This document shows, one piece after another, positions 22,077-32,000 of a stretch of 64,000 nucleotides of DNA (the first letter of the stretch is position 1; every line of letters starts with the position of its first letter). Where the stretch lies: NCBI GenBank assembly GCA_943704425.1, contig CALSCP010002792.1:53627-117626 (forward strand). Direction: 5' to 3'. This DNA is from Ministeria vibrans ATCC 50519. Taxonomy: Eukaryota > Protista > Filasterea. The position numbers and the translations under genes are program-made. The notes under the pieces were generated by a model that was given only the letters and a program-made list of their open reading frames with translations, searched no databases and was not told the origin of the DNA.

Positions 22077-23861
22077 ATGAAGAGTAATACAATGCAACGT
22101 AAGTCGACAATATGATTAATAATCAATCAATGCAATGATTGTTATTATTGACTAATTTGACTTATTATTATTGTTATTGAGCTTATTCTGTGAATGCGTC
22201 TCAGCGCATTATGCGCACAAGCTTATGGACCCCGTGCCGAGTACGATTTAAACACTAAACCGCCCTATTCGAGTGAAAATCCAGTGAGGCTGTCTCACAT
22301 TTCCCTGTTCCCCAGGGTGATTTGTCTTGTGAGCGACGAGAATGAGGCGGCGCTCAGCACAAGCAGTGGTGAACGGCTCTTTCCCTTTGTGCGTGCTCGT
22401 CTGCCGCTCGTGTCGCAGCTCATTGTTGACGTGGGTATCCGCCAGGTGGAGCAGTGCGGCGACGGAGGACTGCTTGCCACTGGGCTGTGTGCTGCTCTGG
22501 TCGAGGAGATGCCAAGACATCCGTGCGCCTCCACTGCAGCACTCTACTCCCTCGCTGCAACCATAGCCTCCGAGCAAACCGATGCACCGCCGTACGCAGA
22601 TGGTGCTGCCTTTCAGCGCTGTGACGGCGCACGCGACATGATTGCTGTGTAGGGCAAGACACAAGCAGACAGACTACACTCATTTCATCATTTCAATCAG
22701 TGTCGCAGGCGTTGTGGGATCCCATCGAAATGTCTGCCGCTTTATGACAGACGAGGACGTGGCGCACGTATCGACTATGATTGTCAAGGCGTTTGTCAGC
22801 GCCATCGACGAACGGTTCGCCACGCCCATGGTACGTTTCGTTCCGGTCTCGCCATCGGCCGACTCGACACTGCTTCGGGTGCTTGATGGCCTTCTCGTCG
22901 ACCGACCACCCCCACGTGTTAATGATATATCTCCACCTCCGCCACACGAGGGTCTTTCAGTAGCGCTCTTTTCGGCGTCGCTCGCGGGCGATTGGGAGGG
23001 CGCAGAGCGCGAGTTGGCCCTAAGGCAAGCCAGTGTGCAGGTGGAAGGGACCCGAGCACGTCTGGAGCCTGCACTGCTCGCCCGCCTACTGCACATTGCC
23101 GACTCACTTGTGCACTGTGGCTGTCGTCTTGTCGCGTACGTCGTTACCCATTTGTTCGTCAAATTTTCGACCGCATCACTTTCAATGGTTGTTCTGAACG
23201 TAGGAGCCAAAAGTGCGTTCATCCGCGCATGCGCCAGCGACTGGTGCACGCCGGGGTGATGGTGCTGGAGCGCTTGTCGGTGCGCCACATGGATGGGATG
23301 GCGCGTGTGAGTGGGGCACGAGTGGTCGGGGACGTGTGGAGCGACGGGGCGTGTGTGTGTTCGGGCAGAGTAGCGTGCGTGTCGCCCTGCCGTGTACCGG
23401 GCGGCGGTGAGCAGACGCTCGTTCAAGGATTCGCTGTGTCGACTGTGCTTGTGGCGGGGGTCGATCGGGCGGCGACCGATGAGCTTGAGCGTCTCTGTGC
23501 GCGAGCAGTACGTGTGCTGCGCTGTGCTCTCGCCCAACCCCGTCTTGTGACCCCCGGTGCCGTCGAAATGTCCATTGCGAAGCGTCTTCGAGAATTCTCG
23601 ACGCGTTCACTGCTCACTCGGGATGATGCAGCGCGCTACAGCGGCGCGTCCCTTGCCGAGTCGCGTGAGACTCTGGAACGTGTTGCGCGCGCACTTGAAC
23701 GTCTTGCCGAACGAGTACAGCCCCATACAATGGAAGAAGACGCCGAAGAGCTGGAGGAGGCTTCTTCTTCTTCGTTCCACGTTCGTGATGTGCACTCGGT
23801 GCGACTCCAAGCCATTTCGAGGGCGCTTGACACTGCTGCTTTCCTCGCGAACACAATGTAA
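22077..23861 (+). CDS. MKKS: MKKS/BBS6 chaperonin-like protein
   Basis: AYGP, CGDGGLLATGLC, and QKCVHPRMRQRLVHAGVMVLERL resembling the MKKS QKVIHPSL..IDR segment; start codon tentative. Confidence 0.75.
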
Positions 23862-25763: not shown

Positions 25764-27306
25764 TAGTAATACTTTTTTCATACTTATGGCCACTTATTTA
25801 ATACTCATGACCACCTATCCTATTTGATATGTTGTAGTTACCTGATTAATGGCCACAAATGGGATATGCGTCTCTACGTGCTTGTGGCATCCTTTGTGCC
25901 TCTGCGCGTCTATCTCTTTGACGAGGGTCTCGCGCGTTTTGCCACTGTGCCCTATGTCACAACCCGAAAGCACCGCTCAAACCGCTTCATGCACCTCACC
26001 AACTACTCAGTCAACGTCAAGAGTAAAGACTTCCAAGCAAACGAAGACGAGCGTATGTAATTTGAGAGAGACATTATCATAATAATTATTTTCATTCTCA
26101 CTCGTACAATAATATAAAAGATATTAATATTATTAATTATTTTTATTATTAGTAGTAGTATTAAAATACATTGCATTGTAGAACATGAAGATGTCGGGCA
26201 CAAGTGGAGCCTAACAGCGCTCAAGCGGCACTTGGGCGATCAGTGTGGCGTTGACGTGTCTGCATTGTGGCTGCGTATCCACGCACTCATTGTCAAGTCT
26301 CTTGTGGCCGTCGAACCCACTGTCGCCAGTGCCATCTCGTCCACCCTGCGCGACCGTCGCTCCTCCTTTGAACTCTTTGGGTAATTGCAATACACTCCCG
26401 CTTTTATGCACGTGCTCACCCATGTTTGCCTGGCTGACTGGCTGGCTCAACTCTTTCACTCACACTTACTCGTTCACTCTCTGTAGGTATGATGTAATGC
26501 TGGACAGTGCCTTGCAACCCTGGCTTATTGAGATCAACGTGTCCCCATCGCTGCACAGCACTGCACCCATTGACCGTCGCATCAAGAGCGCCCTTGCCCG
26601 CGACACTTTCAACCTCGTGGGCTTCCCTTTCCCACCAGATTCTGCTTCCACCCCACGCTCCACACTCCATCCCAACGAACACCGTGCTCGCTCCGCCGCA
26701 ACCCCACGCGACGAGCGCATTCGTCGTACGAGCACAAGCAGCGGCAACTCGTCCCTCCTGGCGCACCTCACCCTCGCCGACATTGATCTCATCGTCGATC
26801 TCGAAGATGAGTACGCCCGACGCGGTCTCTTTTCTCGTGTCTTCCCCATGCCCCGTGCCCACAACACGTACGCGCGCTTCTTCGAGTCACCCCGTCATGA
26901 AAATCTAATTCTCGACGCTTGGCTCACACGATACGACTCACAGCGCGAAAACGGTACCATACACAAACAATTAAGGCATTAGGCGTGTATTATCCAAACG
27001 CACACGTTCTCTTTTTTTTTTTGCACAGGTCTCGCGTGGCTACGCAAAACAACGGAGACGCTACTGGCACAGCCCGAGCCAGAAGCATCCTCCACATCGT
27101 CGCGACCAGCAACACGCGCATCTTCGTCCTCCTCCCGTCGCAGATGCGTTGATTCGCCCTTTCACGCCCGTCGCACATCACGACGTCCTTCCGCTTCGTC
27201 CATTCATTCACAGCCTGTGATTCCTCCAATCGTTGCCGAGGGCAATACTGTGTGCCAAACGACCAAAAGAGAATCTACACAGACCAATGTAACAAAAAAT
27301 GAATAA
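24559..27306 (+). CDS. TTLL4: Tubulin glutamylase, TTLL4-like
   Basis: INHFPRSFELGRKDRL, ILKPPASARGIGI, KWDMRLYVLV, MHLTNYSVN, FELFGYDVMLD..PWLIEINVSPSLH; multi-exon. Confidence 0.9.
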
Positions 27307-27352
27307 GTATACTATACCAATGAAAGAACAGCAACACAAAAAAAAAATTGAA

Positions 27353-27438
27353 GCTCAGAAAGCACAGAGGGTAATCCGTGCAGCTGCTTTTCAGCACGTA
27401 TAATACTAAGACTGGGGCGGCAGCTAACTCATCATGGC
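27353..27438 (-). ncRNA. Box C/D snoRNA, SNORD31/U31 (yeast snR67)-like; guide for LSU P-loop Gm
   Basis: C AUGAUGA (27435-27429), guide UGCCGCCCCAGU antisense to LSU ACUGGGGCGGCA, D' CUUA, C' UGCUGA, D CUGA (27358-27355). The +5 rule hits the second G of UGGGGC (E. coli G2251/yeast G2619 equivalent). Confidence 0.85.
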
Positions 27439-27632
27439 AACACCAAGACACACACACATGTCATAAAATATCTTTTGTTCTGCTTACCCAAAGAAACTCT
27501 CACACACACGCACGCTGCATGCCGCTCATGATAGTATCAGTGACACAGGTCACATCTGTATGGGAGAACAAAAAGACGTGAGAAAAAAATCGAAGAAAAC
27601 ATAAAAAATAACAATCAGCAACAAAAAAACGA

Positions 27633-27756
27633 AATTGTTCAGTAATACGCGCGCTAAATCGTCAGTGGCTAAGGGTAAACGGACTCTTTGCAATTATCCA
27701 AATCCCCGCCTCGGAGGATTGACAGATGTAAATAGCCTGAATTCATCATTACAATT
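27633..27756 (-). ncRNA. Box C/D snoRNA guiding SSU rRNA Um in AGGAUUGACAGAU (SNORD110/snoR14-like)
   Basis: 6-bp terminal stem AAUUGU/ACAAUU, C AUGAUGA, 13-nt guide AUCUGUCAAUCCU directly before D' CCGA, internal hairpin, C' UGACGA, D CUGA. Family name is from recall. Confidence 0.85.
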
Positions 27757-27983
27757 CCAGCAAAAAAAAAACACGAAAAATGTACATGTCGGTCGTTTTT
27801 ACCTTGAAGGAAGCTAAGAGGCGCCAAGCGGTCAGCGGCACACATGTAGCTGGTTGTGGATCTACACGATAGACGAAGCGAGAGTCAGTGAAGCGACAAA
27901 GGCGAAGTGGCACATGGACCAAAAGACCCACGAGATCAACACACAAAAAAAAAATTAATTTTGTAGACGTTTGTCATCACGAA

Positions 27984-28060
27984 TGCCTCAGTGTAACTAT
28001 GAAAATCACCATGACGGCACAATATGCACCGCTCTGATACATAAGTTTTCCTCCGCGGCG
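27984..28060 (-). ncRNA. Box C/D snoRNA, SNORD46/U46 (yeast snR63)-like; guide for LSU helix-69 Am
   Basis: 3' end UUCAUAGUUACA-CUGA is antisense to LSU GUAACUAUGA; the +5 rule hits the second A (yeast A2256 equivalent). GCC/GGC terminal stem, degenerate C (CGGAGGA), D' CAGA, hairpin CGGUGCA/UGUGCCG, C' UGGUGA. Confidence 0.78.
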
Positions 28061-28399
28061 TGCGTGTGAAGGCGAGGAGCGAAAAAACGAACAAAGCAGA
28101 ATAATAAACGACCTTACCGATGGTCTGAGACGCGCCAGTTTACATGCAATCCATGCTCACGAGAGAGGAGAAGCAAACAGATACTTTGCTCATGTTGAAT
28201 AAAAAAAAGTGAAAAGTAAATTTTATTTTTCGAAATGAAATCGATTTCCGAATAAATCGAATTCTCGATCAAACTGAATTTCCAAATTATTTTCCAATTC
28301 ATCATTATCACTTCATTATCGTGCAAATTGCAAGTTTGCACGTTGCAACAGTTGCTTTTGTCTGACGTGTCTTGTTCTGACCCGTTGTCTTTGTGATCC

Positions 28400-28929
28400 A
28401 TGTTCTCGGTGGGCAACCCGGCGATCCTCCGGGCACTGCCGCCCGACCTGAAACTGCCACAACCCTGGCGAACAGTCGCAACGGCGTCGTCGCCGGACCG
28501 CAAGCACATCGCTGTCATCTCGCACGATGTCATTGCCATTTGGAACACTTCGGTATGGACAAGAGACGCGTCATGAGCAGAGGAGACGTGTCAACTTTCG
28601 TAAACCTCTCCGTCTTGTTTCAGCCGTACGCCTTGGTCGCATGCCACGTTCGCACGGGCATTAGCAAGTCCAATCGCAACGTAGACGTCTGCTGGCGCCC
28701 CGGCGGGAGCTCGCTGGTTGTGCGCACCGCCGACAACACCATCCTGTTCTACTCGCTGAAACGCCTCGACGGCAAGTTTGCCTACCGCTGTCGTGCCGCA
28801 TCGTCGCCCAATGCCACCACTCTCGGTGCCGACGACACCCGAATACCCGTCGTGTCCCTCCAGCTGGTGCGTCTCGTTGAACTCGACCGTGTCACACACG
28901 ACGGTGAAGGCTACACCGCCAGCTGGTAC

Positions 28930-29020
<91 letters not shown>

Positions 29021-32000
29021 ACCCTCTTTCTCTCTTCTTTCTTTTTTTCTCTCTTCTTTCTTTTTTTCTTTTTCTTTTTTTTTGTCTTTCTCTCTATCAT
29101 CTTTTGTTTCTTTTCTCCTCCAATTTCTATTACTTTTGTTTCTTGCTCTCTCTCACTTTTTTTCTCTCTCTTTTTATCACCGTATAATTTCTTTCATTTC
29201 ATTATTCCTCTCTCTCACTCACTCTCTCTTGCTTACCTCTTGCTCCCTCTTTTCTGTCCAACAGCATGTTTGCTCGCAGTGAACACATTGTGATAGCCAC
29301 GACCACGTGCGAGCTCTTGTTTCTACGTTGGGATGGCCTCCTCGACGAAGAAGACACCATTCTGTGGCGTCAGCTTGTGCCCGACCTTGACAATCACTCG
29401 GCCTACCCCATCTCCATTGAATGTGCTCGATGGCAATCGCGTCTTCCCAACACCATTGTTTTGTTGCTCAGCGACGGTCAAATTGTTTGCTTTATTCTCG
29501 ATGGAGTGCGCGTCACCCCAGGCGACAACAGTGTGCGATCTACGTCGCCCGTTGAAACCCACGCTCCATCATCACCCACCGCCACCACAATTGCCTCAGC
29601 ACCCTTGACCACGCCCCCATCGACACCCTCGTCGTCGTCGTTTCTCTCATTCTTCAACCCTTTTAGTCTCCTCTTTCCCCACTCCCCGTCGCGCCCTGGC
29701 TCACCCAGAGGCAGCACCACCACCCAGTCCGACGCAAGTCTGTCGACAAGCCAGCGGTATACAGCGTGTTGCTGCAGTTCGGGCATGACTGCCTCGTCGA
29801 CACCCGTCTGCCTTGTCTTTTGTACACCCATGCAACTCATTGCAGTTGCCGACTCGAGCGGCCTCGTCTGTGTTTACACCCTCGACATGACCGCCTGCCG
29901 CGTCTCGCCCTCGCACCGTCTCGTGCTCCCTCGTCAGTTCGTGTCGCAATCACGTGGCACTGGCTCCGTTCTTGACCTTGACTGGGCGCCCGATGGCCAT
30001 GCGTTGGCCGTCGCCTACCAAAACACAGGCGTTGCCGTCTGGAGCACCTATGGTCAGTTGCTATGTGTTCAGCCTGTTTGCGAGTGTGCTCCCGACGACA
30101 CGAGCAGTGCGTCTGCGGCCGCATTCGACGCTGGCGGTCGCAGCGTTGCCTGGGGTCAGTTGGGTCACTCTCTTCTCGTCGCGCCCAACACGGCAACGAG
30201 CAGCAGTGGCACCAGTGGCAATCACAGCGACGATCTCTATGTATTTTCGATTGTGCAATCCGCACAGCTTCGCAACTTCAATGCCGACAATAGCGAGCGG
30301 GTCTTCTTTGTCGGTGCAGATCGTGTCGTGATGCGCTCGTCCGACTTTGGCACGTTGCATTCGCTCACATCGTGCATGAACACTCCATCTCTCAGTGCCG
30401 TTGGCAGCCACGTGCGTCTCACCAATGTAACCAGTCTGCTTCGCGACCCTCACAACGTCGTGTCGTCGGGACTTGTAGAGCAGTGGCGCACTCTCATGGT
30501 CCCCAGTGACTACGTCGCCGCTCATGGACCTCTGCGCATTGCGGCTGTCGACGAGTCTGCCTCTGTGTTTGTCGTGGCTGCCGCGCGTTCTTTTGCCATC
30601 TACCGTCGGCACCATGGTTGGCGCTCGTTCCTTGCCACGCCCCGTGCTCCCGAAAACACCGTGGTCATTCACTCTATGTGCTTCTGGCGCGGCCTTCTTG
30701 TGGTCGGTGCCTCCGACGGCACCACCATCGCCTCGCATCGTGTCATCTTCTATTTCTTGCCCGACACCAACGACGGAGGTCTCAGCGCTACGACGAGCAC
30801 TCGCGCTGCTTCATCCGAATCCTCGTCGAACAAGGGCAACGACAAGGAGAGCGCGCGCGTGGCCCAGCGCTACTCGTTTGCTGTGTCGCATCGCGTGCGC
30901 CATCTTAATGTGCTTGGTGATCATCTCGTCACGTACACGGCAAATCGTCGTGCACTTGTGCACCAGCTCACCGTCAACACGCAAAAGCCCAACACCATGG
31001 CAGCCCATCTGGTACACGACGTCGACCTGACCGCCCACGCGTCCCCGGTCGCTGCCGTGTCGGCCGTCGCGCTTCTGGCCGACGCCGATGGGCTATCCCT
31101 CATTGCCAACATTGCTGGCAGTGTGCTTCTCTTCCGCCTGGGCTCGGCTGTATTCGACGAGAGAGGCGGCACCCAACACGACATTGCCCACTCGAGTCCT
31201 CCACTTGTCCTCTCGCGCGAAATCGAACAGCTTTGGATGCCGCGTCCCCTATCCTCTCTACGCGATGAAATGCACATATGCAGTGCAATTTACTTCGGTC
31301 GAGGCGCCCACGGAATGCAAGTAAGCCCGCACAAAAATTGATTATAAGAATTATATGAAAAGAAAAAATTAATAATAATAATAATACTAATAATATTTTA
31401 TTTATGTATTGATTGTATCGTGACATAGATCTGTTTGCCTCTGTTTGAAGAGGCGGACATGCGACGCGTGTCACGGCGCATCCTCGCACGGGCACCGCCT
31501 AACGTAACGGGCACCCAGCGCGTCGAAGATCTCTCGTCCTTCCGGCCCCCGCTCGCCTACAAACGTGTCTTCGTCCCCTTCCCGGCCCCCTTCTACACCC
31601 TCTGCGTCGACACCCGTCTCGCCGTGCTCCATGGCATCGCCGCCGAGCCCGTCGACGATCCGGGTTCCATGATGATCCTCGTTCAGAAATCACGCACGTT
31701 TCTCGACCATCTTTTGCGCACACTCGTTCGTCGAAAGTACGCACGAATTTGCAAAAACAAAAAAGAAGAAAAAAAGAACCCTCCAACAAAAAATTCTGAC
31801 ACATTAAATCCTGTGTAGTTTGGATGTATACGCAATGATGATTGCGCAAAAGTTTTCGTCGCTTCGGTCGTTCACGCACGCCCTTGAGCTGATGGTGCAC
31901 GAGGTGCTTGAGGAGGAAGCTATCTCGATGACGGGCTATCGCGCCGACGCAGAGCTTCCGCGCGTCGTCCAGTTTATCGCACGCTTTCCGCAGTACCGTG

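Follow-up and report, generated by a model that had tools for sequence, protein, structure and literature searches.

What does the minus strand encode between a TTL-family gene and RIC1 in the filasterean Ministeria vibrans, where no credible open reading frame (ORF) is seen but several intron-like intervals carry complements to ribosomal RNA (rRNA)? We addressed this question by computational analysis of a window of 64,000 nucleotides (nt), that is, the whole stretch of DNA under study (G000:C2792:53627-117626; assembly of 29.7 Mb in 2860 contigs). The locus lies at 27270-28215, is single-copy in the genome, and is flanked on both sides by genes on the plus strand. Our reading, to which we give a probability of roughly 0.7, is that it represents a spliced non-coding host gene which would release three box C/D small nucleolar RNAs (snoRNAs), one from each intron. 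All units, boxes, exons and introns of the candidate host described below are on the minus strand.

Box C/D units and their predicted rRNA targets

The rRNA genes of the organism were located with the Rfam eukaryotic models for small subunit (SSU) and large subunit (LSU) rRNA, and the minus strand was then searched for complements. Targets were assigned by the box C/D guide rule, according to which the fifth paired nucleotide upstream of the D or D' box is the methylated one. Three guides were found, with 10, 12 and 11 nt of contiguous Watson-Crick pairing in units 1, 2 and 3, respectively, each at a distance of 0-1 nt from its box. All three hit sites for which methylation is known in other eukaryotes. 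A previous sequence-only reading of this DNA had proposed one C/D unit per intron with a perfect guide of 10-13 nt. The one-per-interval arrangement and perfect guides to the organism's own rRNA were recovered, but the SSU guide extends over 12 rather than 13 nt because the organism's own rRNA reads GACAGAC, and the C box of unit 1 is a variant one.

Complementarity as such is not informative. Bare 10-mers complementary to rRNA were counted in the 1.2-kb region: 10 are on the minus strand and six on the plus strand, compared with about six expected by chance. When both strands are considered, three places in the window have a guide of at least 10 nt which adjoins a D-like box and is preceded by a perfect C box, and two of these are snoRNAs 2 and 3. 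The third, at +63318, was rejected; the sequence there is GC-rich and coding-like. It is the combination of features, and not the bare complement, which exceeds chance.

snoRNA 2 (27631-27758, 128 nt) is similar to SNORD110/HBII-55/snoR14. It contains a C box ATGATGA (27749-27743), a D' box CCGA (27714-27711), a C' box CTGACGA (27665-27659) and a D box CTGA (27642-27639). Its terminal stem, GGAATTGT/ACAATTTC, forms eight of eight pairs in the register of a kink-turn (k-turn). The guide TCTGTCAATCCT (27726-27715) is directly followed by CCGA and pairs over 12 nt with SSU positions 1229-1240, so that U1233 is the target. This corresponds to the D' guide AUCUGUCAAUCC of the SNORD110 model (RF00610), which is aimed at the U of GGAUUGACAGA in 18S rRNA and which is found here in the same register as in the consensus. 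The unit is the best SNORD110 match in the genome, but with an E value of 0.7. Minor SNORD110 matches elsewhere (contigs C1546 and C1606) have neither guides nor boxes and are thus chance matches. An assignment to yeast snR55 was rejected, as the table of Neurospora crassa snoRNAs ties this site to snR82/snoR14/HBII-55 (PMC2780460). A shorter form of snoRNA 2 of about 100 nt, ending after the CTGA at 27665-27662, may exist.

Two further complements to SSU rRNA are located within snoRNA 2. The segment 27697-27685 is a perfect 13-nt complement to SSU 1546-1558 without an adjoining D-like box (about 0.01 such complements are expected in 124 nt), and the segment 27656-27647, in the slot between C' and D, is a 10-nt complement to SSU 1460-1469 which is 4 nt off the canonical register. 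These may reflect accessory pairing or chance. In addition, the heptamer TTACCCT is common to snoRNA 2 (27676-27670) and snoRNA 3 (27374-27368), where it is found 4 and 9 nt upstream of CTGA, respectively. No rRNA target was found for the D-side guides of these two snoRNAs.

snoRNA 3 (27350-27440, about 91 nt) has a C box ATGATGA (27435-27429), a D' box CTTA (27410-27407) and a D box CTGA (27358-27355). Its guide TGCCGCCCCAGT is located at 27422-27411, and TGCCGCCCCAG(T) followed by CTTA pairs with LSU positions 2807-2817, with 11 nt in Watson-Crick pairs and one G-U pair. The +5 rule gives G2810 as the target, which in the P-loop is the second G of CUGGGGCGG. The SNORD31 model aligns over the C box, the guide and the D' box in the same register (26 bits, E value 0.004 for a 1.7-kb region), and the D' guide CCGCCCCAGU of SNORD31, aimed at the P-loop G, is placed directly before D' here as well. 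In the 29.7-Mb genome this is the only SNORD31 match (E value 0.018). As 26 bits is below the gathering threshold, we name the unit SNORD31-like. Its D' box, CUUA in the RNA, agrees with the consensus form in the plant snoU31b model as well.

The complete set of C box (ATGATGA), D box (CTGA) and terminal stem is present in units 2 and 3, and we have little doubt that both are real snoRNAs.

snoRNA 1 (27978-28066, 89 nt) is similar to SNORD46/snR63. It has a variant C box CGGAGGA (28055-28049), a C' box GTGATTT (28009-28003) and a D box CTGA (27991-27988). The guide TCATAGTTAC (28002-27993), separated from CTGA by a single A, pairs over 10 nt with LSU positions 2443-2452. Its target A2446 is the second A of GUAACUAUGA in the loop of helix 69, the same loop A at which the D-box guide UCAUAGUUAC of Rfam SNORD46 (RF00218)/snR63 is aimed. 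Guide and D box together, TTTTCATAGTTACACTGA, are identical in 17 of 18 positions to positions 81-98 (of 104) of the SNORD46 model and also match the plant snoR442 and Giardia GlsR7 models. In all three models the guide is located at the 3'-terminal D box, as it is in snoRNA 1. The elements CGGAGGA...CTGA are flanked by a 10-nt imperfect inverted repeat, CACGCACGCC/GGCATTCGTG, with eight of 10 pairs, a value which random flanks reach in 1.2% of trials (probability about 0.012). After a 3-nt bulge, the pairs G-A, A-G, G-U and G-C opposite the D box are in k-turn register.

Two other layouts of this unit were set aside, namely a half-mer of 36 nt in which ATGGTGA would be the C box, and a form in which CTGA serves as D', with GTGATGA for C' and D supplied by a distal TTGA. 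The 89-nt layout was chosen because the homologues carry their guide at the D box and because only this form has a stem in register. The guide itself is not discriminating: the pattern CATAGTTAC-N0-3-CTGA occurs four times in the genome, compared with three times for a reversed control. None of the other three occurrences has a C box nearby. As both the 10-mer and the guide-plus-D pattern are at chance level, unit 1 rests on its context and not on the 10-mer alone. SNORD46 matches elsewhere (contigs C13, C1078 and C382) are without guides and boxes, and thus chance matches.

It could be argued that the unit in intron 1 is decaying or non-functional, which would leave a host for two snoRNAs with one empty intron. 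The unit has no canonical RUGAUGA C box. Full-length SNORD46 models do not match it, and the local match to RF00218 covers 18 nt with 13.3 bits (gathering threshold 40). Its guide-plus-D pattern is at chance frequency genome-wide, and 126 nt separate its D box from the putative 3' splice site, more than in the control introns described below. Moreover, where the U of a C box is normally flipped out, the variant has a G, which could impair binding of Snu13. On the other hand, 17 of 18 nt of guide and D box agree with the SNORD46 consensus, and methylation of the target is conserved in fungi, plants and animals (N. crassa CD33/snR63/U46; PMC2780460). A decayed unit also fits less well with the eight-of-10 stem and with a variant CGGAGGA which places G-A, A-G, G-U and G-C in exact k-turn register with CTGA, and no other candidate guide for A2446 is present among the genome-wide pattern matches. 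We regard loss of this unit as unlikely, and unit 1 as probably a real snoRNA.

Splice-signal layout and the putative host RNA

The sequence-only reading had described GT-AG introns between tiny exons, with junctions at 28118/27861 and 27803/27555. We found the same layout, consisting of GTAA...YAG intervals of 213-256 nt which are separated by spacers of 59 and 68 nt. Putative exon 1 (28118-28215, the outer position being a working limit only) contains the 17-codon early ORF (28192-28139) which had been pointed out before, and ends at a GTAAGG donor. This donor opens proposed intron 1 (27862-28117, 256 nt), which has a branch-like CTGAC at -27, a pyrimidine-rich tract and a terminal TAG. It is followed by putative exon 2 (27803-27861, 59 nt, GC 0.56). 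Intron 2 (27556-27802, 247 nt) has a GTAAAA donor, CTCAC at -27, a strong T tract and CAG, and leads to putative exon 3 (27488-27555, 68 nt, GC 0.50). Intron 3 (27275-27487, 213 nt) extends from a GTAAGC donor to a TAG acceptor, with an alternative AG at 27313-27312. The putative terminal exon 4 (26990-27274, GC 0.56) is antisense to the 3' exon or untranslated region (UTR) of the TTL-family gene.

Composition follows the same boundaries. Outside the snoRNAs, the T content of the intron flanks is 0.34-0.59, compared with 0.25-0.32 in the exons. The flanks of intron 1 have 0.41-0.45, and the 3' flanks of introns 2 and 3 reach 0.59 and 0.57. The 3' ends of the snoRNAs precede the 3' splice site by 116, 75 and 75 nt in introns 1, 2 and 3, in agreement with the approximately 120 and 77 nt given earlier for the first two introns.

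For comparison we read by hand three control snoRNA introns of the same genome, two from a host of U14 and SNORD12 and one from RPS12. The distance from the 5' splice site to the C box is 53, 63 and 50 nt in the controls and 62, 53 and 52 nt at our locus. From the D box to the 3' splice site it is 94, 80 and 74 nt versus 126, 83 and 80 nt, and total intron length is 234, 230 and 211 nt versus 256, 247 and 213 nt. Ordinary introns near the locus measure 75-104 nt. With ranges taken from the controls and probabilities computed after the data had been seen, the probability that GTAA lies between 50 and 65 nt upstream of an arbitrary point in the window is about 0.03, and all three units have it; a pyrimidine-rich YAG 74-130 nt downstream has a probability of 0.05-0.07 and is present as the acceptor of introns 1 and 2.

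The U14 and SNORD12-like host used as control (locus L017, G000:C2583, 1953-1425, minus strand) has two consecutive introns with a 65-nt exon between them, followed by AATAAA. U14 (RF00016) scores 52 bits (E value 4e-9) and the SNORD12/snR190-type C/D RNA (RF00581) 39.5 bits. The joined exons contain an ORF of 112 amino acids (aa); its composition is odd, so this host is probably non-coding. The RPS12 intron (locus L019, G000:C958, 1211-1001, minus strand) is verified by the reading frame, which runs from ...VVVT into DFGEEG... across the junction. It carries a SNORD100-like unit with the guide AGCTCCCTCTT plus CTGA, which pairs with SSU positions 385-393; the Rfam score is only 22.8 bits. In humans, too, RPS12 is the host of SNORD100. 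A SNORD27 match on contig C13 was discarded as AT-rich noise.

The snoRNAs might be real and yet be made without splicing, each from its own transcription unit or from a polycistronic precursor which is cut by an endonuclease of the RNase III type and then trimmed. Yeast and plants use such a route for orthologous guides (background in PMC2780460), and unit 3 would suit it, having a mediocre acceptor and no clear end of the downstream exon. Against this stand the GTAA located 52-62 nt before the C box in all three units (about 0.03 each by chance), the branch-like CTSAC at -27 in introns 1 and 2, and a layout which equals that of the frame-verified RPS12 snoRNA intron and of the U14 host introns. 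Further, the GC-richer spacers of 59-68 nt between the units contain no promoter-like element. We consider production without splicing improbable.

A coding function of the host appears even less probable. The joined exon model contains ATG-initiated ORFs of 17, 32, 13 and 62 aa, of which the first has 17 codons and the longest is located in the GC-rich exon 4; this agrees with the previous statement that the stretch of about 1.1 kb between TTLL4 and RIC1 has no credible ORF. One could invoke a micropeptide, given the short ORFs of 17, 32 and 62 aa. However, no ORF extends across more than two exons, and the 62-aa ORF, which is not recorded as a called gene, lies antisense to the TTL-family gene's open tail, its openness being expected in GC-rich DNA. 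The exon-4 ORFs have no exact match in protein collections, which may not include the records of this genome, and one 26-mer from exon 2 had no match in metagenome contigs. As both neighbours, identified by their TTL and RIC1 domains, are on the plus strand, the host cannot be an untranslated part of either of them. Taken together, a micropeptide gene or a neighbour's UTR is a very remote explanation.

The host's 3' part and the TTL-family gene's tail probably overlap. A 75-nt intron on the plus strand (26954-27028) would link the TTL exon to an open frame of 92 codons, starting at 27029/27031, rich in Ser, Arg and Thr, and ending at the TAA at 27304-27306. Because this frame is open up to the TAA, host exon 4 and the 3' part of intron 3 would lie antisense to it. 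Candidates for the stop codon of the TTL-family gene are at 26982, 27152 and 27306; with the last of these, its coding tail overlaps the host antisense.

At the other end of the host, near 28212, there is a CACTTTTTTTT motif similar to one found upstream of RPS12. As a possible start-site signal it is only a lead.

Several observations weigh against a three-snoRNA host gene, in addition to the deviations of unit 1 described above. All Rfam scores of the three units are below the gathering thresholds: SNORD110 reaches 22.3 bits for unit 2 (threshold 64; E value 0.17 locally) and SNORD31 (RF00089) 26 bits for unit 3 (threshold 40). The terminal stem of snoRNA 3 is weak, with five of eight pairs. 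The acceptor tract of intron 3 is mediocre (13 pyrimidines in 20 positions), with the alternative AG close by. Downstream of 27274 the minus strand has no AATAAA, the only related hexamers being AATGAA (27208) and AATACA (26991), and exon 4 and the TTL-family gene's 3' end, on the opposite strand, probably overlap. The families SNORD46, SNORD110/snoR14 and SNORD31, which had been suggested for a check against Rfam, are thus borne out by their guide and box registers but not by scores at curated thresholds.

The sequence layout and the geometry shared with the control introns fit a host of the UHG/GAS5 type with one snoRNA per intron. The following account of transcription, splicing and processing, of rRNA methylation and of what becomes of the host RNA is inferred from these features. 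On the minus strand, RNA polymerase II would transcribe a single-copy unit which starts near 28200 and diverges from the RIC1 promoter. Splicing would yield a short RNA without a long ORF, and each intron would be debranched and trimmed by exonucleases as far as the assembled small nucleolar ribonucleoprotein, giving rise to one box C/D snoRNA. The snoRNAs would then direct 2'-O-methylation by fibrillarin at LSU A2446, SSU U1233 and LSU G2810. The two LSU sites, in the helix 69 loop and in the P-loop, correspond to A1913 and G2251 of Escherichia coli, respectively. A bolder proposal adds that guide production is mechanically coupled to the TTLL4-like mRNA, by transcriptional interference or by an RNA duplex via the antisense exon 4, and that unit 1 works with a G-for-U k-turn (CGGAGGA); we rate this combination as a long shot.

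Neighbouring genes and surrounding sequence

The TTL-family gene is located to the left of the host on the plus strand. Its last large exon (26488-26952) matches the Pfam TTL domain with an E value of 1.7e-13. When the last TTL exon was searched against protein collections, which may not include the records of this genome, no match was obtained. Further upstream, an ORF at 22992-23858 on the plus strand matches the TCP-1/cpn60 chaperonin family (E value 1.8e-16). What precedes the TTL-family gene is thus a chaperonin-type gene and not a part of TTLL4.

RIC1, to the right of the host and also on the plus strand, starts with an ATG at 28400, about 200 nt from putative host exon 1. Its assignment is based on domain matches further on, to the second beta-propeller (E value 2e-23) and the C-terminal solenoid (E value 1.4e-46). 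The reading frame shifts soon after the first 51 codons, at the GTATGG at 28553 (28553-28640), which implies a short first intron inside GC-rich sequence. A (CT)n microsatellite on the plus strand (about 28990-29016 and beyond, 29020-29074 also being (CT)n) reads SLSLSL... in frame.

The interval 27200-28200, with a GC content of 0.37-0.47, is AT-richer than its flanks and is strongly A-rich on the plus strand, hence T-rich on the minus strand. Such T-richness is what introns on the minus strand would show. Within the promoter gap between RIC1 and the host, the minus strand at 28241-28321 is AT-rich, has several weak matches to C/D models (snoR25 with an E value of 0.76) and carries AATGATGA. 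A snoR25/snoR4a-like snoRNA at this place was rejected, since a C box is present without a D box and without a guide to rRNA. The segment is probably noise or a promoter element.

Comparison with known snoRNA hosts

Human SNHG1 (UHG), GAS5 and Drosophila dUHG are spliced genes without a long ORF, with tiny exons and with one C/D snoRNA per intron. The candidate host resembles them in lacking a long ORF and in having tiny exons and one C/D unit per intron, here deduced from the genomic sequence, and in two of its three introns the snoRNA precedes the 3' splice site by about 75 nt. SNHG1 carries U31/SNORD31, whereas SNORD46 and SNORD110 are found in RPS8 and NOP56, respectively, in humans. The set of snoRNAs thus differs from that of human SNHG1 and GAS5, and neither exon similarity nor synteny can be claimed. 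Unlike SNHG1, GAS5 and dUHG, the candidate host probably extends into the 3' end of a coding gene which converges on it.

In polycistronic clusters of yeast, such as snR190-U14, the snoRNAs are set free by cleavage with Rnt1 and not by splicing. The M. vibrans locus would share with these clusters the derivation of several C/D guides from one dedicated non-coding unit, but each of its units is bracketed by splice signals. In the same genome, the U14 and RPS12 introns agree with those of the locus in length class (211-256 nt), in the distances between boxes and splice sites, and in their T-rich flanks. RPS12 differs in being a coding host, and the U14 host has two snoRNAs and an AATAAA, which is absent from our locus. 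The pairing of U14 with SNORD12/snR190 may be ancestral to animals and fungi, because the same linkage is found in yeast snR190-U14 and in Neurospora cluster V (CD16 and CD37).

For N. crassa, 45 of 55 C/D snoRNAs were reported to be intronic, with five clusters (I-V) in UHG-like hosts whose introns hold one snoRNA each and whose ORFs measure only 159-267 bp, and splicing of these hosts, including alternative splicing, was demonstrated by reverse transcription-PCR (PMC2780460). The distances to the 5' splice site are mostly 41-60 nt (PMC2780460). Among the intronic snoRNAs are CD33 (snR63/U46), with a D guide, and CD44 (snR82/snoR14/HBII-55), with a D' guide to 18S U1227 (PMC2780460). The guide families of units 1 and 2 are thus intronic in Neurospora as well, with the same usage of D and D'. 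The combination of guides per host differs, and the Neurospora hosts are experimentally validated whereas the present one is known from sequence.

The sequence-only reading had taken the organisation to be typical of animals and had suggested that it may predate them. In view of the validated Neurospora hosts this was overstated: a pre-animal origin is already implied by them. A limited literature search found no description of snoRNA hosts in unicellular relatives of animals, which does not prove their absence. What the analysis contributes is a usable annotation of three single-copy guides, aimed at the helix 69 loop, the P-loop and the head of 18S rRNA, together with a putative dedicated host. 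Rfam at curated thresholds has no match in the window. Combined with the U14/SNORD12 host and with the results from Neurospora, the analysis supports the presence of one-snoRNA-per-intron hosts in the common ancestor of animals and fungi. The arrangement is already known from both groups, and the putative M. vibrans host would be a further example, which fills in a lineage between animals and fungi and leaves the overall picture unchanged.

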